NCBI GenBank assembly: GCA_965603825.1
Contig: CBFDEM010000003.1
Location: 434,001-498,000, forward strand
Reading direction: 5' to 3'
DNA: 64,000 nt
From: Blepharisma stoltei ATCC 30299
Lineage: Eukaryota; Protista; Ciliophora
In this document: in pieces, positions 1 through 49,825 of the stretch
Numbering within the stretch: position 1 is the stretch's first letter
Layout of the letters: each line of letters begins with the position of its first letter
Notes under the pieces: generated by a model
What the model was told of the DNA's origin: nothing
Database searches by the model: none
The model's input: the letters and a program-made list of their open reading frames with translations, nothing else
Translations under genes and position numbers: made by a program

Positions 1-3000
1 CACTTGCCATTCCTCGAAGAACTTTAAGAGACACTTATCAAAGAATAGTTGGTGAAGGTGATAAAGTTTTAGGTGCCCTAAAGAAACTTGACGTAGCCTT
101 AAAGAGATCTCCTAAGCAAGCCTTTGACAAATGGGCTAGGTTCGCTAAAGACTGTGGTACAAAGAGCATGCTCGACAACCTAAGAACTCAAAAGCTTCAG
201 AACGCTCTAGAAAAGATTCCTAAACGAACTATGAAGGATGCAGCTGATAGAATTCTTGGAAACGGAAATAGACTTAAAGGTGCTCTTCGCAGACTTTTCA
301 TCCAATTGCAAAAGAAGCCAAAAGAAGCATTTGATAAATGGAGAGGCTTTATGGATTCTTGCAAGAAGAACTCTTTATTAGATGCTCTTAAAGCGAAGAA
401 ATTACAAGACTCCTTAAACAAGATCCCTCAAAGAACTCTCAGAGATGCAAATAATAGAATCATCGGTCAAGGAAGCAAAACTGCTGGAGCTCTCAGAAGA
501 CTTGAAATTACTTTGAAAAAATCAGCTAGAGGCGCTTTCAATAAATGGGCAAACTTCTGTAAGGACTGCAAAGACAAGAAAATAATTGACAACTTAAGGA
601 CTCAACAATTGAAGAATGCCTTGATAAATGTACCAAAACGAACACTTAAAGATGCTACAGATCGTATCAAAGGACAAGGTGATAAAGTCAAAGGAGCTAT
701 AAGGACAGCCATTGGCGCACTAAAGCGAGTTCCTAGAGATGCATTGCAAAAGTGGAAGGACTTCGTAGATGATATTAAGAATAAGAAAACCTCTGACGCT
801 TTGAATGCTAAGAAATTGCAGACTGCACTTGAAAAAGTACCGATAAGAACTCTTAGAGATGCTCATAGTCGAATTATTGGTGAAGGAGATAAAATAGCTG
901 GAGCTATTAGAAGACTTGATATTAATCTTAAGAAAAAGCCAAAGCAAGCATTTGATAAATGGAAAAACTATCTCAGAGCGGTTAAAGACAAGAAAATAGC
1001 AGACAATCTCAAGACACAGCAGCTTAAAAATGCACTTAAGAATATTCCTAAACGAACTTTGAAAGATGCAGCACAAAGAATCAAAGGAGATGGAGATAAG
1101 GTTAAAGGAGTACTTAGAGCAGCATTTGCAATTCTTAGGAAAGCACCAAAGCAAGCATTTGATAAATGGCAAGACTTCGTCCAAGGAACCAAACAGAAGA
1201 AATCATTAAATGCTTTGAATGCTGAAAAACTGAAAAATGGATTAAGAAAGATCCCTGCTAGGACATTGAGAGAAGCTTATAACCAAATTGTTCCTGATAA
1301 TAAGAATGAGCTTCAAGCAGAAAAACTTAGAAAAGCACTTGATAAGATCCCATTACGCACTTTGAGATCTGCATTTAATCCTATTATTCTTGACAACTCT
1401 GATAAGATCAAGTCTGCATTGAGAAATCTTGCTGTTTTGTACTATCAAAGACCTAGAGACTGTTTGAATAAATGGAAACTTGGATGTGAAAAGAAGAAGA
1501 CTGCTGATTCCAACAAGAAACTCAAGGGAGCCATGCTTAAGAACGCTCTTGAAAAACCAGTCCGAAAGCAAGTAAGATCAGGAAGAGACAGATGCCAGCC
1601 AAGCGATAAGGTCAAGAAGACTCTACAAGTTTTCGCACTTCGAGTTGAAAAGATGCCTAGAGATGCTCTTAACAAATGGAAAGCTTTCTTAAACCTTGAG
1701 AAGAACGACAACCTCTCAGATGCAGTAAGAGCTCAAAAACTAAGATATGCACTTGACAGAATACCGATTAGGACTCTGAAAAATAATTATGACTTTATTT
1801 TGCAAAGACATGGAACCAGAGCTTTAGGAATATTGAGATTGTTGTTCAAACATTATCAAGAAATGCCTAGTGAAGCCATGAAGAAGTGGAAAGACTTTGT
1901 TAACAATTGCAAGCAAGGAGACTTACTTAACGCAGTAAACGCTCAGAAACTTAAGCTTGCCTTAGAAAGAATTCCTGTAAGGACCATCAAAGACGCGCAT
2001 CAAAGAATCTTAGGAGATGGAGACAAATTTGCCGGAAATGTCAGAAGAATTCTCATTCAACTGCAAAAGAAACCGAGAGTTGCCTTCAACATCTGGAAAC
2101 AGTACATTCAAGATTGTAAGACAAGAAACTTGTTTGACAATGTAAGATGCCAGAAACTAAAGAATGCTTTAGAAAAGATCCCTAAGAGAACACTCAAAGA
2201 CGCAACTCAAAGAATTATTGGAGGAGGTGATAAAGTTAAAGGAGCAATCAAGAATGTAATGAATGCAATGATCAAAAAACCAAGAGACGCTCTTCAGAAG
2301 TGGAAAGACTACATTAAAGACTGTCAGACAAAGAAAGCTGTAAACGCTCTCAAAGCTAACAAACTTAAGAATTGCTTAGAGAAGGTTATTCCAAGAACTC
2401 TCAGAGACGCTCATAACCGAATTGTTGGCCAAGGAAGCAAGATATTAGGAGCTCTTCGCAGAATGGAAATTCAGCTCAAGAATAAGCCACGAAACGCATT
2501 CAATAAATGGAAACTCTATCTTCAAGCTTGTAAAGAAAAAGGACTCCTCGACAATGTAAGAAGCCAAAAATTAATTAACATCGCTCTCGGCATCCCACGA
2601 AGAACTTTAAGAGAAACTTACCAAAGAATAGTAGGTGAAGGTGATAAAGTTTTAGGTGCCTTAAGAAAGCTTGACATAGCTCTAAAAAGATCTCCTAAAC
2701 AAGCCTTTGACAGGTGGGCTAGGTTCACTAAAGACTGTGGTACAAAGAACATGCTTGACAACTTGAAGACCCAAAAACTTCAAATCGCCTTAGAAAAGAT
2801 TCCTAAACGAACTCTCAAAGATGCAGCAGGCAGAATTCTTGAATCCAATAATAGACTTAAAGCAGCTCTTCGCAGACTTTTCATCCAGTTGCAAAAGAAA
2901 CCTAAAGAAGCAGTTGATACTTGAAAAGACTATATTGACTCCTGCAAGAAGAACGCTTTATTAGATGCTCTTAAGGCAAAGAAATTACAAGAATGCTTAA

Positions 3001-6000
3001 ACAAGATCCCTCAAAGAACTCTCAGAGACGCAAATAATCGAATTCTAGGCCAAGGAGACAAAGTTGCTGGAGCTCTCAGAAGACTTGAAATTACAATTAA
3101 AAAATCAGCTAGAGGAGCTTTCAATAAATGGGCAAACTTCTGTAAGGATTGCAAGGATAAGAAAATGCTTGACAACTTAAGGACTCAGCAATTAAAGAAT
3201 ACTTTAAGAAATCTACCAAAACGAACACTTAAAGATGCTGCAGACCGTGTCAAGGGCCAAGGTGATAAAGTCAAGGGAGCTTTAAGAGGAGCTGTTGTAG
3301 CTCTTAAGAAAGTACCAAGAGATGCATTGCAAAAGTGGAAGGACTTCGTAGATGATTGCAAGAAAAAGAAAGCTACTGATGCTTTAACTGCTAAGAAATT
3401 ACAAACTGCACTTGAAAAAGTACCGATTAGAACTCTTAGAGATGCTCATAACCGACTTATTGGTGAAGGAGATAAAATAGCTGGAGCTATTAGAAGACTT
3501 GATATTAATCTCAAGAAAAAGCCAAAACAAGCATTTGATAAATGGAAGAACTATCTCAAAGCAGTTAATGATAAGAAAGTAACAGATAACCTCAAAACTC
3601 AACAGCTTAAAGATGCCCTTAAGAATATTCCTAAGCGGACTATTAGAGATGCAGTCCAAAGAATTAAAGGTGATGGCGATAAAGTTAAAGGAGCTTTAAG
3701 AGCTGCATTGCTAATTTTGAAGAAAGCACCAAAGCAAGCATTTGATAAATGGAAAGACTTCTGCAATGGCACTAAACAAAAGGATTCATTGGATACTCTT
3801 AAGGCTGAAAAACTTAAAAACGGACTAAGGAAGATTCCTGCTCGAACATTGAGAGACGCTTTGAACCGAATGGTTCCTGACGCTAAGAACGATCTTCATG
3901 CAGAAAAACTTAGAAAAGCGCTTGATAAGATCCCATTACGCACTTTGAGATCAGCATTTAATCCTATTATTCTTGACAACTCTGATAAGATCAAGTCTGC
4001 CTTAAGAAACCTCGCCATTTTATACTATCAAAGACCTAGAGACTGTTTGAATAAATGGAAACTTGGATGTGAAAAGAAGAAGACTGCGGATTCCAACAAG
4101 AAACTCAAAGGAGCTATGCTTAAGAACGCTCTTGAAAAGCCAGTACGAAAGCAAGTAAGATCAGGAAGAGACAGATGCCAACCAAGCGATAAGGTCAAGA
4201 AGACTCTGCAGATTTTCGCACTAAGAGCTGAAAAGATGCCTAAGGATGCGATTAACAAATGGAAAGCTTTCTTGAATATTGTTAAAAACGACAACCTTTC
4301 AGATGCAGTAAGAGCACAAAAACTAAGATACGCCCTTGAAAGAATACCTATAAGGACTCTGAAAAATAATTATGACTATATTCTTCAAAGACATGGAACC
4401 AGAGCTTTAGGAATTTTGAGACTACTATTCAAGCACTACCAAGAAATGCCTAGTGAAGCTATGAAGAAGTGGAAAGACTTTGTAAACTCTTGCAAGCAAG
4501 GAGATCTTCTTAATGCAGTTAACGCTCAGAAACTGAAAATCGCATTAGAAAGAATTCCAATTAGAACCACCAGAGATGCCTACCAAAGAGTCTTAGGAGA
4601 TGGAGACAAACTTGCAGGAAATATCAGAAGAATCCTCATTCAACTGCAAAAGAAACCAAGAGTAGCTTTCAATATCTGGAAACAATACATTCAAGACTGC
4701 AAAGCAAGAAACTTGTTCGATAATGTCAGATCTCAGAAATTAAAGAATGCTTTAGAACGAATTCCTAAGAGAACACTCAAAGACGTAACTCAAAGAATCA
4801 TTGGAGGAGGTGACAAAGTCAAAGGAGCAATCAAGAATGTAATGAATGCAATGATCAGAAAACCAAGAGACGCTCTTCAGAAGTGGAAAGACTACATTAA
4901 AGACTGCCAGACAAAGAAAGCTGTAAACGCTCTCAAAGCTAACAAACTCAAGACTTCTTTAGAGAAGGTTCTTCCAAGAACCCTTAGAGACGCTCATAAC
5001 CGAATTATTGGCCAAGGAAGCAAGATATTAGGAGCTCTTCGCAGAATGGAAATCCAACTCAAGAATAAGCCACGAAACGCATTCAATAAATGGAAGCTCT
5101 ATCTTCAAGCTTGTAAAGAAAAAGGACTTCTCGACAACGTAAGAACCCAAAAATTAGCCAACATTGCACTTGCAATTCCTCGTAGAACTCTTAGAGAAGC
5201 TTATCAAAGAGTTGTTGGAGAAGGAGACAAAGTCTTAGGAGCACTAAGAAGGCTCGAGATTACATTAAAGAGATCCCCTAAGCAAGCATTTGACAAATGG
5301 GCTAAGTTTGCAAAGGATTGCAATTCTAAGAATATGCTTGATAACTTGAGAACTCAAAAACTTAAAAGCGCTTTAGAAAAGATCCCTACTCGAACCATGA
5401 AAGATGCAGCAGATAAAATCCTTGGAAATGGCAATAGACTTAAAGGAGCACTTCGCAGACTTTGGATCCAATTGCAAAGGAAGCCAAAAGATGCATTTGA
5501 GAAATGGAAAGATTTTGTGCACGACAGCAAAAAGAATAACTTACTAGACGCTCTGAAAGCTAAGCAATTGCAAGACTCTTTGCTTAAGATCCCTCAAAGA
5601 ACTATTAGAGATGCTTATAATAGAATTACTGGCCAAGGTAACCAAGTCGCAGGAGCTCTAAGAAGACTTGAAATCACACTTAAGAAAAAAGAAGGAGCTG
5701 CCTTTAATAAGTGGATCAATTTCTGCAAAGACATCGATAAAAAGAAAATGATTGATAATTTGAGAACACAACAACTAAAGAATGCATTGAGAAATATTCC
5801 TAAGAGAACAATGAAAGACGCTACTGATCGTATCAAAGGAGAAGGCGATAAAGTCAAAGGAGCTATAAGAACAGCCATTTTGGCGCTTAAGAGAAAGCCT
5901 CGAGATGCATTGCAAAAATGGAAGGACTTTGTAGAAGATTGCAAGAAAAAGAAGACCTTAGATGCATTAAATGCTAAGAAGCTGCAAACTGCCCTTGAAA

Positions 6001-9000
6001 AGCTACCTCAGAGAACCCTTAGAGATGCTCATAATAGAATTGTTGGAGAAGGTAACAAAGTTGCTGGAGCCCTCAGAAGACTTGAAATTAATTTAAAGAA
6101 AAAGCCAAAGCAAGCATTTGATAAGTGGAAAGACTATCTCAGAGCTGTCAAAGAAAAGAAACTTATGGACAACGTCAGAGTTCAACAACTTAGAGCAGCA
6201 ATGAAGAATATCCCTAGAAGAACCTTGAAAGATGCAGCTGAAAGAGTTAAAGGAGAAGGCGACAAAGTTAAAGGAGTCTTAAGAGCAGCACTTTCAGCTA
6301 TTAAGAAAGCACCAAAGCAAGCATTTGATAAATGGAAGGATTGCATTAGAGGAACTAAAGATAAAGAAACACTGGTAGCTTTGAACGCTAAGAAATTGCA
6401 CACAGCCCTCGAAAAGATTCCACAGCGAACTATGCGCGATGCTTATAACCGCATTACAAGCGATAGCAATATCGTTAAAAGTGCTATAAGAGGAATTGTG
6501 ATTGCACTTAATAAGAAATCCAGAGAAGCTTTTGATATTTGGAATAAGTTCAACAAAGACTGCAACAAGAAGAATGTTATGGATCAGCTGAAAACCGAAA
6601 AATTAAGAAATGCTTTAGCTAATATTCCTAGACGAATTCTGAAGGATGCTCACAATAGAATTATTGGACAAGGCAAAGTTGTAGCCGGAGCACTCAGAAG
6701 ACTTCAGATAGCAATTAATAAGAAGCCTAAGCAAGCCTTTGATAAATGGAAAGATTTCGTGAATGACACTAAGACAAAGAAAGTTTTGGACAACTTAAGA
6801 TCTGAGAAATTACGAAATACTTTAGCGAAAATACCTTTGCGCACAACAAGAGATGCCTTTGAAAGAGTCATTGGAGGAGGAGACAAAGTTAAAGGTGCTC
6901 TAAGACGTCTAATGCTTACTTTACAGAAGAAGACTAAAGCTGCTTTCGACAAGTGGAATAAGTTCAACAGAGATTGCACAGACAAGAAGCTTACTGATAA
7001 CACTCGCACAGAAAAACTTAGAAATGCTTTAGCAAGAATTCCAATAAGAACTGTTAAAGATGCTGCTGATCGAATTCTCGGAGGAAACAACAAAGTCGCT
7101 GGAGCCCTTAGAAGACTTGAAATCTCAATCACAAAGAAGCCTAAGCAAGCCTTCAATAAATGGAAAGACTTTATTCAAGACGTCAAAGAACAGAAACTTG
7201 TTGACAATGTCAGAGCTAAAAATCTCAACGATGTACTAAGAAGAATCCCATTGAGAACCTCAAAGGATGCTTTCAACAGAATCATTGGCCAAGGAAACAA
7301 CGTTGCAGGTGCTTTAAGAAGGTTTGAAATTTCTCTACAAAAGAAGCCTAAGCAAGCATTTGATCTATGGAAAGACTACGTTAAAGCAACTAAAGACAAG
7401 AAAATATTAGATGCGTTGAATGCTCGCAAATTAAATGATGCTTTAGCCAAGATTCCTGTTCGAACACTTAGAAATAGCTTCAACAGTATTGTTGCTACCA
7501 AAGACAGGCTCATTGGAGCACTCAAAGCCTTAGCACGAAGAGCTGAAAGAATGCCTAAAGTTGCTTTTGATAAGCTAGCCAAGAATGCAAACAAAGCTAA
7601 AGCTGATAATTTGAAAGAAGAACTTAAAGGCCAGCAATTGAAGAATGTCCTGAGAAAGATACCAGCTAGAACCTTAAGAGATGCTTACGGAAATATTGTT
7701 CCTGATACTAAGAATGATAAACTTCAAGGAGAAAAACTTAGAAAAGCACTTGATAAGATCCCATTACGTACTTTGAGATCTGCATTTAATCCTATTATTC
7801 TTGTTAATGCTGATAAGATTAAGTCTGCCTTGAGAAATCTTGCCGTTTTATACTATCAAAGACCTAGAGATTGCTTAAATAAATGGAAACTTGGATGTGA
7901 AAAGAAGAAGACTGCTGATTCCAACAAGAAACTCAAAGGAGCTATGCTTAAGAACGCTCTTGAAAAACCAGTCCGAAAACAAGTAAGATCAGGAAGAGAC
8001 AGATGTCAGCCAAGCGATAAGGTAAAGAAGACTCTACAAGTTTTTGCACTTCGAGTTGAAAAGATGCCTAGAGACGCTATTAGCAAATGGAAAGCTTTCT
8101 TAAACCTTGAGAAGAACGACAACCTCTCAGATGCAATAAGAGCTGAAAAATTAAGATATGCACTTGGCAGAATTCCTATCAGAACACTGAAAAATAATTA
8201 TGACTATATTCTGCAAAGACATGGAACCAGAGCTTTAGGAATTTTGAGACTACTATTCAAGCACTATCAAGAAATGCCTAGTGAAGCCATGAAGAAATGG
8301 AAAGACTTTGTAAACTCTTGCAAGCAAGGAGATCTTCTTAATGCAGTAAACGCTCAGAAACTGAAAATCGCATTAGAAAGAATTCCTACTAGAACCACCA
8401 GAGATGCCTACCAAAGAATCTTAGGAGATGGAGACAAACTCGCAGGAAATGTCAGAAGAATCCTCATTCAGCTTCAAAAGAAACCAAGAGTTGCCTTCAA
8501 CATCTGGAAGCAATACATTCAAGACTGCAAAGCAAGAAACTTGTTCGATAATGTCAGATCTCAGAAATTAAAGAACGCTTTAGAACGAATTCCTAAGAGA
8601 ACACTCAAAGACGCAACTCAAAGAATCATTGGAGGAGGTGATAAAGTTAAAGGAGCAATCAAGAATGTAATGAATGCAATGATAAGGAAACCAAGAGACG
8701 CTCTTCAGAAGTGGAAAGACTACATTAAAGATTGTCAGACAAAGAAAGCTGTAAACGCTCTCAAAGCTAACAAACTTAAAAATTGCTTAGAGAAGGTTCT
8801 TCCAAGAACCCTTAGAGACGCTCATAACAGAATTATTGGTCAAGGAAGCAAGATATTAGGAGCTCTTCGCAGAATGGAAATCCAACTCAAGAATAAGCCA
8901 CGAAACGCATTCAATAAATGGAAGCTCTATCTTCAAGCTTGTAAAGAAAAAGGACTTCTCGACAACGTAAGAACCCAAAAATTAGCCAACATTGCACTTG

Positions 9001-12000
9001 CAATTCCTCGTAGAACTCTTAGAGAAGCTTATCAAAGAGTTGTTGGAGAAGGAGACAAAGTCTTAGGAGCACTAAGAAGGCTCGAGATTACATTAAAGAG
9101 ATCCCCTAAGCAAGCATTTGACAAATGGGCTAAGTTTGCAAAGGATTGCAATTCTAAGAATATGCTTGATAACTTGAGAACTCAAAAACTTAAAAGCGCT
9201 TTAGAGAAGATCCCTACTCGAACCATGAAAGATGCAGCTGATAAAATCCTTGGAAATGGCAATAGACTTAAAGGAGCACTTCGCAGACTTTGGATCCAAT
9301 TGCAAAGGAAACCAAAAGATGCATTTGAGAAATGGAAAGATTTTGTGTACGATAGCAAGAAGAATGGCTTATTAGACGCTCTGAAAGCTAAGCAATTGCA
9401 AGACTCTTTGCTTAAGATCCCTCAGAGAACTCTTAGAGATTCTTACAATAGAATTAATGGAGAAGGAAATAAATTAGCTGGAGTATTCAGAAGACTTGAA
9501 ATAACTCTAAAGAAATCACCAAAGGCTGCTTTCGATAAGTGGGCTGACTTCTGCAAGGATTGTGAGAAGAAGAAAATGATTGATAATCTAAGAACTCAGC
9601 AATTAAAGAACGCATTGAGAAATATCCCTAAGAGAACAATGAAAGATGCTGCTGATCGTGTCAAAGGAGAAGGTGATAAAGTTAAAGGAGCTATCAGAGG
9701 GGCAATTATGGCACTTAAGAAAAAACCTAGAGATGCAATGCAAAAGTGGAAGGACTTTGTAGAAGATTGCAAGAAAAGAAAGACTTTAGATGCATTAAAT
9801 GCTAAGAAACTACAAACTGCCCTCGAAAAACTACCTCAGAGAACTCTTAGAGATGCTCATAATAGAATTGTTGGAGAAGGTAACAAAGTTGCTGGAGCCC
9901 TCAGAAGACTTGAAATTAACTTAAAGAAAAAGCCAAAGCAAGCATTTGATAAGTGGAAAGACTATCTCAGAGCTGTCAAAGAAAAGAAACTTATGGACAA
10001 CGTCAGAGTTCAACAACTTAGAGCAGCAATGAAGAACATCCCTAGAAGAACCTTGAAAGATGCAGCTGAAAGAGTTAAAGGAGAAGGCGACAAAGTTAAA
10101 GGAGTCTTAAGAGCAGCACTTTCAGCTATTAAGAAAGCGCCAAAGCAAGCATTTGATAAATGGAAGGATTATATTAGAGGAACTAAAGATAAAGAAACAC
10201 TGGTATCTTTGAACGCTAAGAAATTGCACACAGCCCTCGAAAAGATTCCACAGCGAACTATGCGCGATGCTTATAACCGCATTACAAACGATAGCAATAT
10301 CGTTAAAAGTGCTATAAGAGGAATTGTGATTGCACTTAATAAGAAATCCAGAGAAGCTTTTGATATTTGGAATAAGTTCAACAAAGACTGCAACAAGAAG
10401 AATGTTATGGATCAGCTGAAAACTGAAAAATTAAGAAATGCTTTAGCTAATATTCCTAGACGAATTCTGAAGGATGCTCACAATAGAATTATTGGACAAG
10501 GCAAAGTTGTAGCCGGAGCACTCAGAAGACTTCAGATAGCAATTAATAAGAAGCCTAAGCAAGCCTTTGATAAATGGAAAGATTTCGTGAATGATACTAA
10601 AACAAAGAAAGTTTTGGACAACTTAAGATCTGAGAAATTACGAAATACTTTAGCGAAAATACCTTTGCGCACAACAAGAGATGCCTTTGAAAGAGTCATT
10701 GGAGGAGGAGACAAAGTTAAAGGTGCTTTAAGACGTCTAATGCTTACTTTACAGAAGAAGACTAAAGCTGCTTTCGACAAGTGGAATAAGTTCAACAGAG
10801 ATTGCACAGACAAGAAGCTTACTGATAACACCCGCACAGAAAAACTTAGAAATGCTTTAGTGAGAATTCCAATAAGAACTGTTAAAGATGCTGCTGATCG
10901 AATCCTCGGAGGAGACAATAAAATCGCTGGAGCCCTTAGAAGACTTGAAATCTCAATCACAAAGAAGCCTAAGCAAGCCTTCAATAAATGGAAAGACTTT
11001 GTTCAAGACGTCAAAGAACAGAAACTTGTTGACAATGTCAGAGCTAAAAGTCTCAACGATGTCCTTAGAAAGATCCCATTGAGAACTTCAAAGGATGCTT
11101 TCAATAGAATTATTGGCCAAGGAAACAACGTTGCAGGCGCTTTACGAAGACTTGAAATTTCGCTCCAAAAGAAGCCTAAGCAAGCATTTGATCTATGGAA
11201 AGACTACGTTAAAGCAACTAAAGACAAGAAAGTATTAGATGCGTTGAATGCTCGCAAATTAAATGATGCTTTAGCCAAGATTCCTGCTCGAACACTTAGA
11301 AATAGCTTCAACAGTATTGTTGCTACTAAAGACAGAGTCATTGGAGCACTCAAAGCCTTAGCCCGAAGAGCTGAAAGGATGCCTAAGGTCGCTTTTGATA
11401 AATTAGCTAAGAATGCAAATAAAGCTAAGACTGATACTTTGAAGGAGCAAGCTGATAATTTGAAAGAAGAGCTTAAAGGTCAGCAATTGAAGAATGTTCT
11501 AAGAAAGATACCAGCCAGAACATTAAGAGAAGCCTACGCAAAAATTGTTCCTGATACTAAGAATGATAAACTTCAAGGAGAAAAACTTAGAAAAGCTCTA
11601 GACAAGATTCCTATTCGCACTTTGAGATCTGCATTTAATCCTATTATTCTCGTTAACGCTGACAAGATCAAGTCTGCCTTGAGAAACCTCGCCGTTTTAT
11701 ACTATCAAAGACCTAGAGATTGCTTAAATAAATGGAAACTTGGATGTGAAAAGAAGAAGACTGCTGATTCCAACAAGAAACTCAAAGGAGCCATGCTTAA
11801 GAACGCTCTTGAAAAACCAGTCCGAAAACAAGTAAGATCAGGAAGAGACAGATGCCAGCCAAGCGATAAGGTAAAGAAGACTCTACAAGTTTTTGCACTT
11901 CGAGTTGAAAAGATGCCTAGAGACGCTATTAGCAAATGGAAAGCTTTCTTAAACCTTGAGAAGAACGACAACCTCTCAGATGCAGTAAGAGCCCAAAAAC

Positions 12001-15000
12001 TAAGATATGCACTTGACAGAATACCGATTAGGACTCTGAAAAATAATTATGACTTTATTTTGCAAAGACATGGAACCAGAGCTTTAGGAATATTGAGATT
12101 GCTGTTCAAACATTATCAAGAAATGCCTAGTGAAGCCATGAAGAAATGGAAAGACTTTGTTAACAATTGCAAGCAAGGAGACCTACTTAACGCTGTAAAC
12201 GCTCAGAAACTGAAAATCGCATTAGAAAGAATTCCTGCAAGGACCATCAAAGATGCGCATCAAAGAATCTTAGGAGATGGAGACAAATTCGCAGGAAATG
12301 TTAGAAGAATCCTTATTCAGCTTCAAAAGAAACCAAGAATTGCCTTCAACATCTGGAAACAATACATTCAAGATTGTAAGACAAGAAACTTATTCGACAA
12401 TGTCAGATCCCAGAAATTAAAGAATGCTTTAGGAAGGATACCGAAGAGAACAATCAAAGATGCAACTCAAAGAATCATCGGAGGAGGTGATAAAGTCAAA
12501 GGAGCAATCAAGAATGTAATGAATGCAATGATAAGGAAACCAAGAGACGCTCTTCAGAAGTGGAAAGACTACATTAAAGACTGTCAGACAAAGAAAGCTG
12601 TAAATGCTCTCAAAGCAAACAAACTCAAGACTTCCTTAGAAAAAGTTATACCAAGAACTCTAAGAGATGCTCATAACCGAATTGTTGGCCAAGGAAGCAA
12701 AATATTAGGAGCTCTTCGCAGAATGGAAATTCAGCTCAAGAATAAGCCACGAAATGCATTCAATAAATGGAAACTCTATCTTCAAGCTTGTAAAGAAAAA
12801 GGACTGCTCGATAATGTAAGAAGCCAAAAATTAGCCAACATTGCACTTGCCATTCCTCGACGAACTTTAAGAGACACTTACCAAAGAATAGTTGGTGAAG
12901 GTGACAAAGTTTTAGGTGCCCTAAAGAAACTTGAAGTGGCCTTAAAGAGATCCCCTAAGCAAGCCTTTGACAAATGGGCTAAGTTCGCTAAAGACTGTGG
13001 TACAAAGAACATGCTCGACAACCTAAGAACTCAAAAACTTCAAAACGCCTTAGAAAAGATTCCTAAACGAACCATAAAGGATGCAGCTGACAGAATCCTT
13101 GGAGCTGGCAACAAAGTTAGAGGCGCACTTCGCAGACTTTTCATTCAGCTTCAAAAGAAGCCTAAAGACGCCTTTGAGAAATGGAAAGACTTCGTCAACG
13201 ATTGTAAGAAGAATGGCTTGCTTGACGCTCTCAAAGCTAAAAAACTGCAAGATTTAGTCCTTAAAATCCCACAGAGAACTATCAGAGACGCCTACACCCG
13301 GGTTGTAGGCCAAGGGAACCAAATAGCAGGAATATTCAGAAGGCTTGAAATTACATTAAAGAAATCCGCAAAAGGAGCCTTCAGCAAATGGGCAAACTTC
13401 TGCAAGGACTGCAACACCAAGAAAATGCTTGACAACGTACGAACTCAGCAGCTTAAGAACCTTCTGCAAAGCATCCCACGAAGAACCTTAAAAGACGCCA
13501 CAGACCGCATCAAAGGAGAAGGCGACAAAGTCAAAGGAGCCATGCGCAGCATCATTAACAGTCTCAAACGAAAGCCTAAAGACGCCTTTGAAAAATGGAA
13601 AGCTTACCTAAGTGATATCAAGACTAAAAACGTTTTGGACGCCCTAAACGCTAAGAAGTTACAAGCGGCCCTTGGCAAAGTCCCTCAAAGAACTCTTAGA
13701 GACTCCCTCAGCCGTCTCATAGGAGAAGGCAGCAAATTGGCAGGCGCCATCAGAAGACTTGACATCAACCTCAAGAAGAAGCCCAAAGAAGCCTTCGAAA
13801 AGTGGAAGAAATACGTCAGAGACTGCAACGAAAAGAAAATCATGGACAATCTCAAGACTGAGAAGCTTAAACATGCAGTAGAGAGAATTCCTCGAAGAAC
13901 CCTAAAAGATGCAATAGGAAGAGTTATAGGAGAAAGCGACAAACTGAAAGGGGCTCTAAGGACTATTCTTTCTGCATTGAAGAGATCACCTAAACAAGCT
14001 TATGACAAGTGGAAAGACTTTGTTAATGATTGCAAGAATAAAAATTCATTAGATGCATTGAACGCCAAGAAGCTGCAGACTACACTTGAAAAACTGCCTC
14101 AGAGGACCATGAGAGATGCATATTCTCGCATTTTGGGTGACAATAACATTGTAAAAGGTGCTATAAGAAGGATCATGATTTCGCTTAACAAGAAGACTAA
14201 AGAAGCCTTTGACCTATGGGAACAGTTCAATAAACAAGCCAAGAAAAAGACCATCTTAGACCAGCTGAGGACTGAAAAACTAAGAAATGCTTTATCCAAT
14301 ATTCCAAGACGTGTCATTAAGGACGCTCACAACCGCATTATTGGACAAGGCAAAGCTGTAGCTGGAGCCCTCCGAAGACTTCAAATAGCTATTAACAAGA
14401 AGCCGAAACAAGCTTTCGATAAATGGAAAGACTTTATCCATGACATTGAGACCAAGAAAGTCCTTGATAATTTAAGGTCAGAAAAACTGAGATCAACACT
14501 CGCAAAATTACCATTAAGAACTGTCAAAGATACTGTAGAAAGGATCATTGGAGGAGGCGACAAAGTAAAAGGAGCTTTAAGAAGGATTATGCTGGCACTA
14601 CAAAAGAAGACTAAGACTGCCTTCGATAAATGGAGAATCTTCACCAAAGACTGCAATGAAAAGAAATGGACTGACAATGCAAGGACTGAAAAATTAAGAA
14701 ATGCATTAGCCAAGATCCCTGCAAGGATCGTCAAAGATGCAGCTGATAGGATTATTGGAGGAAACAATAAGGTCGCTGGAGCACTTAGAAGGCTTGAAAT
14801 TGCAATTACAAAGAAGCCGAAGGCTGCTTTCGATAAGTGGAAGAACTATTTGCAAGCTTGCAGAGAAAAGAAATTAATGGACAATGTCAAAGCGACTAGT
14901 CTTGAAAACACGCTTAAGAAGATTCCTTTGAGGACCGCTAAAGATGCACTTAATAGAGTTTTGGGACAAGGAAACACCGTAGCAGGAGCACTCAGAAGAC

Positions 15001-15700
15001 TTGAAATTTCTTTACAAAAGAAGCCTAAGCACGCGTTTGACTTGTGGAAGAACTTTAACCAAGCTGTCAAAGATAAGAAAGTACTAGACTCTCTGAATGC
15101 CACCAAGCTTAAAGACTGCTTATCTAAGATCCCAGTCCGCACATTGAGAAACAGCTTTAATAGCATTGCAACAACTAAAGACAGACTGATATCTGCCCTT
15201 AAAGCTTTAGCCAGAAGAGCTGACAGGATGCCTAAACTTGCCTTCGATAAGCTAGCTAAAAATGCTCACCAAGGTAAAGCTGATGACTTGAAAGGAGAAC
15301 TCAAAGGTCAACAATTAAAGAACGTCCTCAGAAAAATCCCAGCCAGAACCTTAAGAAATGCTTACCAAAATCTATGTCCAGGCCTCAGTGCTGAGCTTAG
15401 AGGTGAAAAACTCAGAGCAGCCCTCAATAAGATCCCAGCCCGCACTTTGAGATCTGCGTTTAACCCTATTGTTCTTGACAACTCTGAAAAGGTTAAATCA
15501 GTCTTTAGGAACCTTGCCATTATGTATGACCAAAAACCTAGAGATGCCCTAAACAGATGGAAACTAGCTTGCCAAAAGAAAAAGGTGGCGGATTCTGATA
15601 AGAAGCTCAAAGGAGTCATGCTGAAGAGCGCTCTTGATAAGCCAGTTAGAAAAGCTGTAAGATCTGGCAGAGACAAATGTCAAATCAGTGAAAAGACCAA
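1..15700 (+). repeat. Hierarchical coding tandem repeat: ~207-nt (69-aa) units within 2583- to 3849-nt super-repeats
   Basis: The landmark YYQRPRDCLNKW occurs at 1440, 4023, 7851 and 11700, and diverged (YDQKPRDALNRW) at 15525. Confidence 0.95.
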
Positions 15701-17609
15701 AGCAGCGCTTAAAGCTTTATCTTATAGGTGTGAAAAACTCCCACAAGACAGCATAAGAAAATGGGCTGAAAATGTTTTAGGCAAAAAAGCAGCTGCTATC
15801 CAGGAGCGCATGAGGTCTGAAAAACTGAGATCAGCACTATTTAGGATCTCACAAAGGGTCCTTAAAGAGTCTGAGTCTAGGATTGTAGCTAAAACAAGCC
15901 GCGTCAAGTTTATTCTGGTAAGTCTTGCTTTAAGAGCACAAAGACGCTCAAGAGAAGCCTTCGACAAATTAAGAAGCAACGTCCACAACTCAATTAAAAA
16001 CCAAATTGCTACCAAACTGGACGGTGAAAAACTTCGCCAGACCTTAGACGCCATCCCAAGACGAATCCTCAAGAACTGCTTATTAAGAATCGTAGGGGGA
16101 GGTTCTCTCGTAGCAGGTGCCTTAGCTAGATTTAACGAACACCTCAACAAGATCAAGCGTTTCGCAGTCTTTAAATGGAGAGTGGTAAACGATGCTGAAA
16201 AGCATGTGAACAGGTATAGACTTGTAGCTTCCTTATTCGCCAAACTGCAGCAAGGATCCAGATTTAACCTCCGCATGGCCTTCAAGATGTGGACTAATGA
16301 TAAAATGCAAAGAATAATCCAAAGCTTAAGGAAAATCAACTTAATCGCAGAAGACGGCGCTAGAAGAGCTATAGGACACTGGTTTGCCCAGTCTATGAAA
16401 ATCAAAGGAGCCCTTCTTGCTAAATATGCCCCTGCTCTACAAAACTTGTTCAAGCTTAGAGAAAAATGCCTTTCCCGCAACATAAATAATGGCTTTAGGA
16501 CTTGGCTGAATGCAATAGACAGGAACAAGATCAAGAGAAGAACTATTTCTAAGGTTATGAGAAACCTTGTAGGGCTGCAAAAAGGAGGCATTGAGACACT
16601 CAGAGAAAGAGTCTTGAAGCTGAAAATGATCAAGAAAGTAAACGGAGCCTACTTGATATCAAGAATTATGGAAGCCAAGGCGAAAATCATGATGAGAGGA
16701 AGACTTAGCATATGGTCACAAGATGAAAAGATGAGGATTTTGAGGTTGAAGAAGAAATATCTTCTAAGCATGATCAATTTATCTAGCATTTCTTACCAAA
16801 CATCGGTGTGGAGATGGAAGTACGTGATTACCAGACATGGAGTTGAGCTGCATCCTAAGCAAACCCTCATGTGGGAACGTATAATAAGAGTTGGAAACCA
16901 ATACCAAAGACGTCTCAAGCAGTTCGCTATGTTTAAGCTTATTTTGACTTATAGAACTGCTCTGCCGATACATAACCGCCAATCAGTGCAGCTTGCAGTC
17001 AGCTCTTTGTTGCGCGCTAGCAATATGTCTCGAGATGGAAGAATGAGCGCTGCAATGCCAAACTTGCGTGAAGGCATCAACTTTAGGACCCCATCCCCAG
17101 AAAGACCTACAACTGCCATGGATACTTCTATATCAATCCCTATAACAACGACAGCTTCACAAGGAAGAAGCAGCATGGAAGAGCCAATGTCAGGGAAAAT
17201 GTCCAAAGAAGAAATCGCTGAGCTCAGCAAGAATGGAGCAACTGAAGTCATCTGTCTGCAGCTCAGAGAAGTTAGGGTAAGACAGCTTGCAATTGGATTT
17301 TCTTCAATCGCTTCTTATAGCAGACAAGTTGGACTGTTTGAAGATGAAAGGACAAGACTTATAGAGTCAATAAATGAGCTGAGATATGATAAGCATAGCT
17401 TGCTTGAAGATAATACAGCACTGAGACACCACAATGAAGCTTTAATAGAAAGTTTAGAAGCCACAAATATGAATTTCCACGCCCTTACGCTACAGCTGGA
17501 TCAGATGAGGCTTGGAAGAATGGTGAGAGTTATATCAAAGATGATTGAGATACCAGTGCTTGAAGCTTTAATTGTGTTGAGACACAACGCTGGAATCTTA
17601 AGTCCTTAA
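3..17609 (+). CDS. Giant Sfi1-like (putative centrin/spasmin-binding) repeat protein, 5'-truncated by the window; >=5868 aa
   Basis: The frame is open from nt 3. ORFs 168..2924 and 3165..17609 share one frame, joined by a single TGA (2922-2924) at the repeat's conserved W (AVDT*KDY vs AFDKWKDF). 69-aa repeats carry L-x7-A-F-x2-W-K motifs like Sfi1 repeats. Coiled-coil C-terminus; ends TAA. Confidence 0.8.
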
Positions 17610-18135
17610 ATAAGTTAAACTCTTAATTTTAATAAGTTTCTGCTATAAATTAATTTACAATGAGGATTTAATTTTCAAATCTATAAATAATTTGTTTATA
17701 TTTATATATTAAAATAGCATGCGTTACATTTATGTAAAGGATTAAGAAATAAATTATTGTGTTTGAAAGAATTGAGGCATCCATTATAATAAATTTCAGT
17801 TTTTATAAAATTGATACTCTTTGTGTATTAAACTTGCTAAAGAGTAATGGGTAATTTAATGAAAAAAGTATTTTATACATTTTTGATTATTTATTAAATT
17901 TTTGTTCCTACTATTTAATCTTTGTTTCAAAAGGCAGTAAATTGTTCTAAGAAACTAAAAATAAATTTTAAAAATATTTAAATTATTTTTCTCTGATATA
18001 AAATTAATTTATGCTGTTTTGCATAAATTCAGTAAGTTCCAAAACGAAATAATCTATATTAGCACGATTCATATATATAATATTTACTAATTAGCTTTGA
18101 TTAGGCATACATAGCACAGCTATTATAGATATATT

Positions 18136-48161: not shown

Positions 48162-48611
48162 TTAATTTGCGGTAAGCATTCTTACAAATTCATCAAAATT
48201 TATTTGTCCATCCCCATCTAAGTCAGCTTCTTTAAGCAGATCATTTACTTCTTCATCAGTTAATTTTTCTCCAAGATTAGTCATAGCATATCTTAGTTCT
48301 GAAGCACTTATTAGACCGTTTCCATCCCTATCAAATATTTTAAAAGCTTCCAAAAGTTCACCTTTTGAGTCTTGTCCTTTCATTTGTTTAGCCATAAGAC
48401 CCAAAAACTCGGTAAAATCTATAATTCCATTCTCGTCTGTGTCTATTTCGTTTATCATATCTTGAAGCTCAGTTTCTGTTGGATTCTGTCCTAAGGATCT
48501 CATAACTGTAGATAATTCCAAAATTGAGATGCCCCCATCTCCGTTTTGGTCAAATAATGAAAAAGCGTCTTTAAATTCTGTAATCTGTTGATCGGTAAAA
48601 TTGTGTAACAT
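48162..48611 (-). CDS. Calmodulin-like protein (divergent paralog), 149 aa
   Basis: Four EF hands: [27 protein letters not shown] and DLDGDGQIN. Confidence 0.93.
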
Positions 48612-49375: not shown

Positions 49376-49825
49376 TTACTTAGCCATCATCATTCTGACG
49401 AATTCTTCATAGTTGATGTGTCCATCTCCGTCAAGATCAGCTTCTCTAATCATTTCATCGACTTCCTCATCAGTAAGTTTCTCTCCCAAGTTAGTCATGA
49501 CGTGTCTTAACTCAGCAGCACTGATAAGTCCATTTCCGTCTCTATCGAAGACTTTGAAGGCTTCAATAAGCTCTTCTTCAGTGTCTTGATCCTTCATCTT
49601 CCTAGCCATAAGGCTCAAGAACTCAGGGAAGTCAATGGTCCCGTTTCCATCAGCATCAACTTCGTTGATCATATCTTGAAGTTCAGCCTCAGTTGGGTTT
49701 TGTCCAAGAGATCTCATGACAGTGCCGAGTTCTTTTGTTGTGATTGTCCCATCACCGTCTTTGTCAAACAGTGAGAAAGCTTCCTTGAACTCTGCGATCT
49801 GCTCTTCGGTTAGTTGTTCTGCCAT
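49376..49825 (-). CDS. CAM: Calmodulin, 149 aa
   Basis: Canonical [26 protein letters not shown]...[10 protein letters not shown]; start taken at ATG 49825. Confidence 0.97.

Follow-up and report, generated by a model that had tools for sequence, protein, structure and literature searches.

Which protein is encoded by the 5,868-codon reading frame that enters a 64,000-nucleotide stretch of the genome of the ciliate Blepharisma stoltei ATCC 30299 from its left edge, and what would such a protein do in an organism that is not known to have ultrafast contraction? The stretch, referred to below as the window, corresponds to positions 434001-498000 of contig CBFDEM010000003.1 (C3) and has a G+C content of about 35%. 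Judged by its sequence, the gene is a new giant member of the known heterotrich family of the Spirostomum GSBP proteins and Stentor Sfi1-1, which bear calcium-binding centrins in contractile fibres, and not a new kind of thing; the region quite probably encodes most of a scaffold of about 1 MDa that would be loaded with centrin, respond to Ca2+, and belong to cortical fibres of the myoneme type. In itself, the gene is no surprise: a member of this family was to be expected in this published genome (41 Mbp in 64 telomere-to-telomere contigs, 66% AT, with introns of 15-16 bp; PMC9942806), searched here as 41,464,486 bases in 64 contigs.

The extent of the gene follows from a stop map. Forward frame +3 is open, without TAA or TAG, for the 5,868 codons of positions 3-17606, and each of the remaining five frames contains 160-656 stops over the same span. 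Within positions 1-17700 frame +3 has six stop codons; five are located at or after 17607, and the sixth is a TGA at 2922-2924. This TGA occupies the Trp slot of A-x-D-x-W-K-D, where the neighbouring units have the Trp of A-F-D-K-W-K. It is read as Trp because it stands at the conserved Trp of the repeat and because UGA encodes Trp in B. stoltei (PMC9942806); the whole coding sequence has 119 TGG codons and this single TGA. The left window edge cuts the frame, which in the upstream contig DNA stays open back to position -8961, 8,855 codons free of TAA and TAG in all. The first ATG is found at -8916 (C3:425084), 8.9 kb upstream of the window, and is supported as the start by homologues from the word search described below (P0003, P0004, P0008-P0011), which align from their residue 1. 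The whole open reading frame (ORF) from this ATG comprises 8,841 codons (26.5 kb) for a protein of 1,011 kDa with an isoelectric point (pI) of 10.5, of which the window carries residues 2974-8841, the last two thirds. The intron-free frame of at least 5868 amino acids (aa) reported by the first-pass annotation thus stands: frame +3 is free of TAA and TAG over 3-17606, no intron is needed, and sequence contigs are colinear with it over 12776-17632. The main parts of the gene and of the full protein are as follows.

3..17606, + strand: C-terminal 5,868 codons of an intronless 8,841-codon ORF (stop map, upstream extension, alignment of the N-terminus)
2922..2924, + strand: lone in-frame TGA, read as Trp, at the repeat's conserved Trp position
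17607..17609, + strand: TAA stop codon (stop map)
Residues 1 to about 930: N-terminal region with degenerate Trp motifs (layout of the full protein)
Residues about 930 to 8380: repeat array (layout of the full protein)
Residues 8381-8841: non-repeat C-terminal domain (layout of the full protein)
3..16223, + strand: the window's part of the 69-aa array, about 78 of about 100 units (iterated hidden Markov model, HMM; column frequencies; autocorrelation)
16224..17606, + strand: C-terminal domain of 461 aa: a conserved core of helices, then a linker rich in Ser/Pro (low confidence) and, at the end, two long helices

The translated frame is rich in Lys (15%), Leu (12%) and Arg (9%), and its repeat region is strongly basic, with 24.6% K+R versus 10.1% D+E. 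Its self-identity, 0.074 in the background, reaches 0.33 at a lag of 69 residues and 0.37 at a lag of 138, the 138-aa doublet being a stronger period than the single 69-aa unit. An iterated HMM of the unit recognises about 100 units of 69 aa between residues 930 and 8380, including 66 full-length ungapped 69-mers. The hallmarks of the unit are Pro5, G18-x-G20, G25, Pro38 and the core A41-F-x-K-W45-K; among the 66 full-length copies the conservation amounts to 91% for P5, 100% for R7, 91% for G18, 83% for G20, 91% for G25, 85% for P38, 100% for A41, 97% for F/L42, 82% for W45 (otherwise Leu), 76% for K46 and 100% for L66, and positions L1, T8, D11, A12, R15 and K44 are conserved as well. Each unit has one Trp and is cut by its two prolines into parts of 33 and 36 residues. 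Exactly 69 aa separate the tryptophans in 59 of the 119 Trp-to-Trp gaps, and 68 or 70 aa in 14 more; the F/L-x2-W-K/R core is present in 61 full copies. Around the 82 Trp residues of the window, position W-3 carries a hydrophobic residue in 94%, K prevails at W-8 and P at W-7 (61/82), and the C-terminal side is also hydrophobic, at W+3 (F/Y) in 85%, at W+4 in 77% and at W+7 (Cys/Val) in 63%. The first-pass annotation had described very basic 69-aa units with an AFxKW motif and IP, GxG and KP breakers, and these are real and regular, as the 66 full-length copies and the pI of 10.5 attest. Its division of the unit into three parts of 23 aa has to be abandoned: the identity at lag 23 is 0.055, below the background, there is one Trp per 69 aa and not three, and a 23-aa sub-period was likewise rejected by BLOSUM62 autocorrelation (z of -2.0 at lag 23 and -1.6 at lag 46). 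The same analysis gives a weak hint only (z of 1.4-1.7) of similarity between the 33- and 36-aa halves.

In eight consecutive units, located upstream of the window at about -3129 to -1473 (C3:430872-432527, residues 1930-2481), Leu takes the place of the anchor Trp (A-L/F-x-K-L-K-D). The same replacement is seen in a few isolated units of the window, as in A-F-D-K-L-A-K at protein residues 5454 and 8013. Such units may be sites of altered or no centrin binding.

The family to which the gene belongs was recognised by a word search for which the 4,894-aa piece of the product served as query, the frame having been searched as two separate pieces, 3-2921 and 2925-17606. Of its 11 matches one, P0001, is the product of this very gene; the remaining ten are giant relatives with lengths of 2,750-4,437 aa, and the 69-aa Trp spacing is common to all 11. 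Two matches come from Stentor coeruleus, the better being SteCoe_17904 (1,890 bits, 36-37% identity over the repeats). The similarity extends beyond the repeats: the C-terminal 530 aa can be aligned with the final 490 aa of SteCoe_17904 as far as its third-last residue (E 5e-77), and at the N-terminus SteCoe_17904 (E 4.5e-46) and most of the word-search matches are homologous too. The C-terminal domain is shared, at 31-45% identity, with P0002-P0005 and P0009, of which P0002, from a metagenome scaffold, is the closest; the terminal pair of long helices is strongly conserved (ELRY-x-KHSLLEDN...). With repeats 37% identical to those of SteCoe_17904 and with both ends homologous, the earlier assignment to a giant Sfi1-like family, in which every unit has a single putative centrin site anchored on Trp, is borne out.

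SteCoe_17904 is Stentor Sfi1-1, whose 69-aa repeats consist of a 23-aa motif (beginning with KGAL and ending with W-K/R) followed by 46 aa, with helix-breaking Pro/Gly; when it is silenced by RNA interference, the patterning of cortical centrin and oral regeneration are disturbed and contractility falls (bioRxiv 10.1101/2025.08.11.669701). It resembles the Blepharisma protein in its 69-aa units, its Pro/Gly kinks, its non-repeat C-terminal domain and part of its N-terminus; the Blepharisma protein differs in being 2.4 times longer (8,841 versus 3,739 aa), in its super-repeats of 861 and about 1,276 aa, and in its block of eight Leu-for-Trp units. The GSBP1 and GSBP2 proteins of Spirostomum minus (13,125 and 17,974 aa) are similarly giant, intronless and basic in their repeats, have a 69-aa Trp interval, and co-precipitate spasmins, the partners identified by immunoprecipitation with mass spectrometry being centrin-type spasmins (PMC9946354). 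The Blepharisma protein is half to two thirds their size and matches their motif at about half of the defined positions. This comparison was made with the published 23-mer, K-G-A/V-M/L-R-x-L-x-K/H-K-L-A-Q/D-K-P-K-D-A-x3-W-R/K (PMC9946354), which corresponds to consensus positions 24-46 of the unit: on average 9.1 of its 18 defined positions are matched around the 82 Trp residues of the window, versus 3.05 +/- 0.13 (maximum 3.49) in 200 shuffles. In S. ambiguum the unit also has two prolines and a 33/36 split, and a construct of three 69-aa units co-purified with centrin and was compacted by Ca2+ (bioRxiv 10.1101/2024.11.07.622534). Whereas Spirostomum has two GSBPs, a single gene with the strict motif is found in the genome of Blepharisma, which contracts slowly: all 21 genomic occurrences of K-P-K/R-x-A-F/L-x-K-W-K/R are in the giant gene, the repeat queries against the genome recovered this gene alone among the matches listed, and the C-terminal domain is the sole copy found.

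Two sources (bioRxiv 10.1101/2024.11.07.622534 and PMC5483020) cite a giant Sfi1-like centrin-binding protein of the infraciliary lattice of Paramecium tetraurelia, and the former gives it as the BLAST query that found the 69-aa repeat proteins of Spirostomum. By this description alone it is alike: a sizeable ciliate protein that binds centrin and serves as scaffold in a cortical network responsive to Ca2+; it is absent from the 11 word-search matches. As for the N-terminal region, the only other genomic match to its first 150 aa or so is found at C39:52854-53312 (+ strand; loci L051/L052), at 35% identity; it sits in an open frame of 243 aa, followed by one of 285 aa, and is not a giant gene.

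The array itself is made of super-repeats of 861 aa and of about 1,276-1,283 aa, the copies of which are up to 99% identical in protein sequence. The two sizes differ by six units and include one half unit each, which gives 12.5 or 18.5 units. At each edge there is an irregular linker module that opens with a half unit without the Trp helix; the half units are truncated HMM matches spanning only model positions 1 to about 16-25. The boundaries in the window, placed by these matches and by the super-repeat offsets, are listed below.

1242..1334, + strand: half unit (about 31 aa, without the Trp helix) at a super-repeat boundary
3825..3917, + strand: half unit and super-repeat boundary, 861 aa past the preceding one
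7650..7748, + strand: half unit and super-repeat boundary, about 1,275 aa past the preceding one
11499..11597, + strand: half unit and super-repeat boundary, about 1,283 aa past the preceding one
15327..15395, + strand: last half unit and super-repeat boundary, about 1,276 aa past the preceding one

Pairs of super-repeat copies differ at silent sites, with a synonymous divergence (dS) of 0.18-0.50 in the young pairs and about 3 (3.1) in the old pair, and the ratio of nonsynonymous to synonymous divergence (dN/dS) is 0.06-0.17; the repeat copies are under purifying selection. Since the silent sites differ while the protein is kept, the copies are not ghosts of the assembly.

Four public sequencing runs from one study, presumed by guess to be RNA, contain 88% of the sampled words of positions 15400-17900. 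Their contigs are colinear with the gene, and one of them covers 12776-17632 without gaps or joints, which makes introns over the final 4.9 kb unlikely. In all four runs the contigs end at 17630-17632, 23-25 nt past the stop codon, and there is no coverage of 17771-17950.

17630..17632, + strand: common 3' end of contigs from the four runs, the likely transcript end

A shared end just past the stop codon fits a transcript and would be unexpected for genomic DNA; it is support, not proof, of a transcript, and the gene is probably transcribed.

The relation to canonical Sfi1 is far less direct. No PF08457 match was obtained in three repeat and C-terminal pieces with E values up to 1, and Pfam searches of these pieces and of the N-terminal 930 aa returned sub-threshold or borderline noise only, without Sfi1 and with no stretch significant alone. 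A genome-wide PF08457 scan found matches on contigs C52 (29.7 bits) and C57 and none in the giant gene. The C52 match (C52:55757-56005, - strand) alone among the loci of the genome exceeds the PF08457 cut-off; it is a candidate for a canonical Sfi1 gene, separate from the giant one. No yeast Sfi1 chain of the PDB was recovered with a three-unit profile; the matches that this profile did produce (a neurotoxin translocation segment, haemoglobin and apolipophorin) were taken as chance, each having a single-stretch E above 1. A feature search of the ESM Atlas gave unnamed clusters scoring <0.9, with low recognition and no lead. The similarity to Sfi1/GSBP repeats expected in the first-pass annotation stands in its GSBP half, by the motif count given above, and is not supported in its Sfi1 half, direct similarity to canonical Sfi1 being found neither with PF08457 nor with the three-unit profile.

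With yeast and human Sfi1 the giant protein shares the F/L-x2-W-K/R core on a basic helix and a presumed stoichiometry of one centrin per repeat. It differs in its spacing of 69 aa instead of 23-36 aa, with no 23-aa period, in a helix that is broken by conserved Pro/Gly and not continuous, and in a protein size 8-10 times larger. Of the canonical consensus A-x7-L-L-x3-F/L-x2-W-K/R, the F/L-x2-W-K/R part is present and the LL part is absent. 'Sfi1-like' thus denotes membership in the heterotrich family, which is linked to Sfi1 by the F/L-x2-W-K/R core and by the binding of centrin or spasmin in relatives.

The most likely function, by analogy with these relatives, is that of a centrin-loaded scaffold of cortical Ca2+-responsive fibres; that the giant protein itself binds centrin, responds to Ca2+ and sits in the cortex or in myonemes is proposed by extension from them. 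In such a scaffold, about 100 tandem 69-aa helical units would each offer one basic amphipathic helix, roughly G-A-L-R-R-L...K-K-P-K-x-A-F-x-K-W-K, anchored on the conserved Trp, and an acidic EF-hand protein of the centrin type would dock on it. The chain would be kinked between the helices at the conserved I-P, G-x-G and K-P positions, and Ca2+ bound by the centrins would cause the loaded filament to compact or bundle. The filaments would be joined to each other, or anchored in the cortical fibre network of Blepharisma, through the two unique end domains, of which the C-terminal one finishes in long, coiled-coil-like helices.

Structure models were made with AlphaFold2 (AF2) for the C-terminal domain and for the following piece of the array.

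5994..6614, + strand: three consecutive canonical units; residues 60-150 of this piece were used in the complex test with centrin

In the model of the three units (25 aligned rows), helices are broken at G-x-G, sometimes at K-P, and also from one unit to the next; the predicted local distance difference test (pLDDT) is 57 and the predicted template modelling score (pTM) 0.18. The model fits an extended, kinked helical chain without a fold of its own. The C-terminal domain (pLDDT 52) is predicted as all-helical; a stretch rich in Ser and Pro is of low confidence, and the domain finishes with a pair of long helices. Possible partners are numerous, the genome containing at least 150 EF-hand matches. 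A gene for a bona fide centrin of 168-171 aa, whose best PDB matches are caltractin and centrin-2, is present in at least eight copies that are at least 91% identical and differ chiefly in their first 12 residues; such near-identical copies suggest a high demand for this one centrin. Centrin-2-like and centrin-3-like genes are also present.

C12:100233, C23:242702, C36:512597, C40:277348, C42:35132, C44:505024, C41:361442 and C48:319437: dispersed centrin copies (loci L031, L035-L040, L045)

Several points weigh against this reading. Besides the missing matches to PF08457 and to the yeast Sfi1 chain, the 'LL' anchor of yeast, at W-8/W-7, is replaced by K-P, and this suggests that the docking mode may differ from that of canonical Sfi1. 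The comparison with GSBP1/2, which at 13-18 thousand aa exceed the length range of the word search with the 4,894-aa query, concerns the published motif and not the full sequences, the four runs with matching contigs are only guessed to be RNA, and both AF2 models are of low confidence (pLDDT 52-57). The single prediction of a complex, between one unit with its flanks and a centrin of 170 aa, scored 0.27 and 0.31, under the mark of 0.34; made without controls, it gives no verdict and carries no weight either way, and binding of the repeats by centrin is proposed by analogy. Finally, since Blepharisma contracts slowly, participation in contraction is not as safe an assumption as it is for the relatives.

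Among the alternatives, an artefact of assembly, or a dead repeat expansion from which no protein is made, can practically be dismissed. Internal copies reaching 99% protein identity over 207 aa and the fragmentation of short-read contigs inside the repeats are what such an explanation would draw on, whereas 8,855 codons free of TAA and TAG, the silent-site divergence of copies with a low dN/dS, termini conserved in other species and contigs that stop just past the stop codon all speak against it. It is also unlikely that the Trp helices bind calmodulin, a calmodulin-like protein or some other acidic partner in place of centrin. The Stentor preprint leaves calmodulin binding to Sfi1 open, the LL anchor of yeast is lacking while W+3, W+4 and W+7 are hydrophobic, and calmodulin and calmodulin-like genes are located about 31-32 kb downstream in the window, maybe by coincidence; the Spirostomum partners, however, are centrin-type spasmins, and it is with centrin that the three-unit construct co-purifies.

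A further alternative retains the centrin scaffold and assigns it chiefly to structural patterning, for example to the spacing or anchoring of basal bodies, the shaping of the oral apparatus or the elasticity of the cortex, and not to contraction. Blepharisma is not known to have ultrafast contraction, which would agree with this, as would the part played by Sfi1-like proteins in Paramecium and Tetrahymena, where they act in the infraciliary lattice and in the spacing of basal bodies. Among the named relatives the closest is Stentor Sfi1-1, which is required not only for contraction but also for the anterior/posterior patterning of centrin and for oral regeneration; yet family members in both Spirostomum and Stentor do affect contractility, and Blepharisma is listed among organisms with myoneme-dependent contractile behaviour. 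Patterning as the chief role has a limited chance of being correct. The scaffold of Ca2+-responsive fibres is preferred here, and its presence in Blepharisma is expected and not paradoxical, because Blepharisma, together with Stentor, is counted among the heterotrichs whose contractile behaviour depends on myonemes (bioRxiv 10.1101/2024.11.07.622534) and because Ca2+-dependent cell models of it are cited in the literature. The first-pass annotation had found the gene notable in a host without ultrafast contraction; the slow host remains a point of interest, and the paradox is weaker than was stated.

How centrin would dock on the unit is a separate matter. According to a passage of PMC3871271, the centrin-binding motif of XPC reads W1-x2-L4-x3-L8 and that of Sfi1 is the reverse. 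In the 69-aa unit the reverse triad (L8-x3-L4-x2-W1) is broken by K-P and a forward triad, W45, F/Y48 and C/V52, is conserved, which suggests a different docking; we infer that the heterotrich motif fits the forward, XPC-like pattern better than the reverse pattern of Sfi1. That the unit docks centrin unlike canonical Sfi1, with one lobe perhaps left free for the second, Trp-less helix or a neighbouring filament, is a doubtful proposal. If it were true, Blepharisma would, by its docking mode, its block of eight Trp-to-Leu units and its half-unit shifts (the last two may be specific to the lineage), be a slow variant supplied by nature, in which the factors that govern the speed of centrin-based contraction could be studied.

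A full-length, well-delimited scaffold of the GSBP/Sfi1-1 type is now placed in Blepharisma, a slow shape-changer whose relatives contract in milliseconds. Set against Spirostomum and Stentor, the number of its repeats, the layout of its super-repeats, its units without Trp and the centrin genes of its host could help to identify the scaffold features that determine how fast and how far this Ca2+-driven, ATP-independent contraction goes.

It is also worth noting that the window contains a gene for a canonical calmodulin of 149 aa (49376-49825, - strand), with a calmodulin-like paralogue, also of 149 aa, 0.8 kb away (48162-48611, - strand). An identical calmodulin is encoded on contig C34 (about 90255-90701), where a calmodulin-like gene (about 94308-94757) is located about 3.6 kb off; the two pairs possibly represent a segmental duplication.

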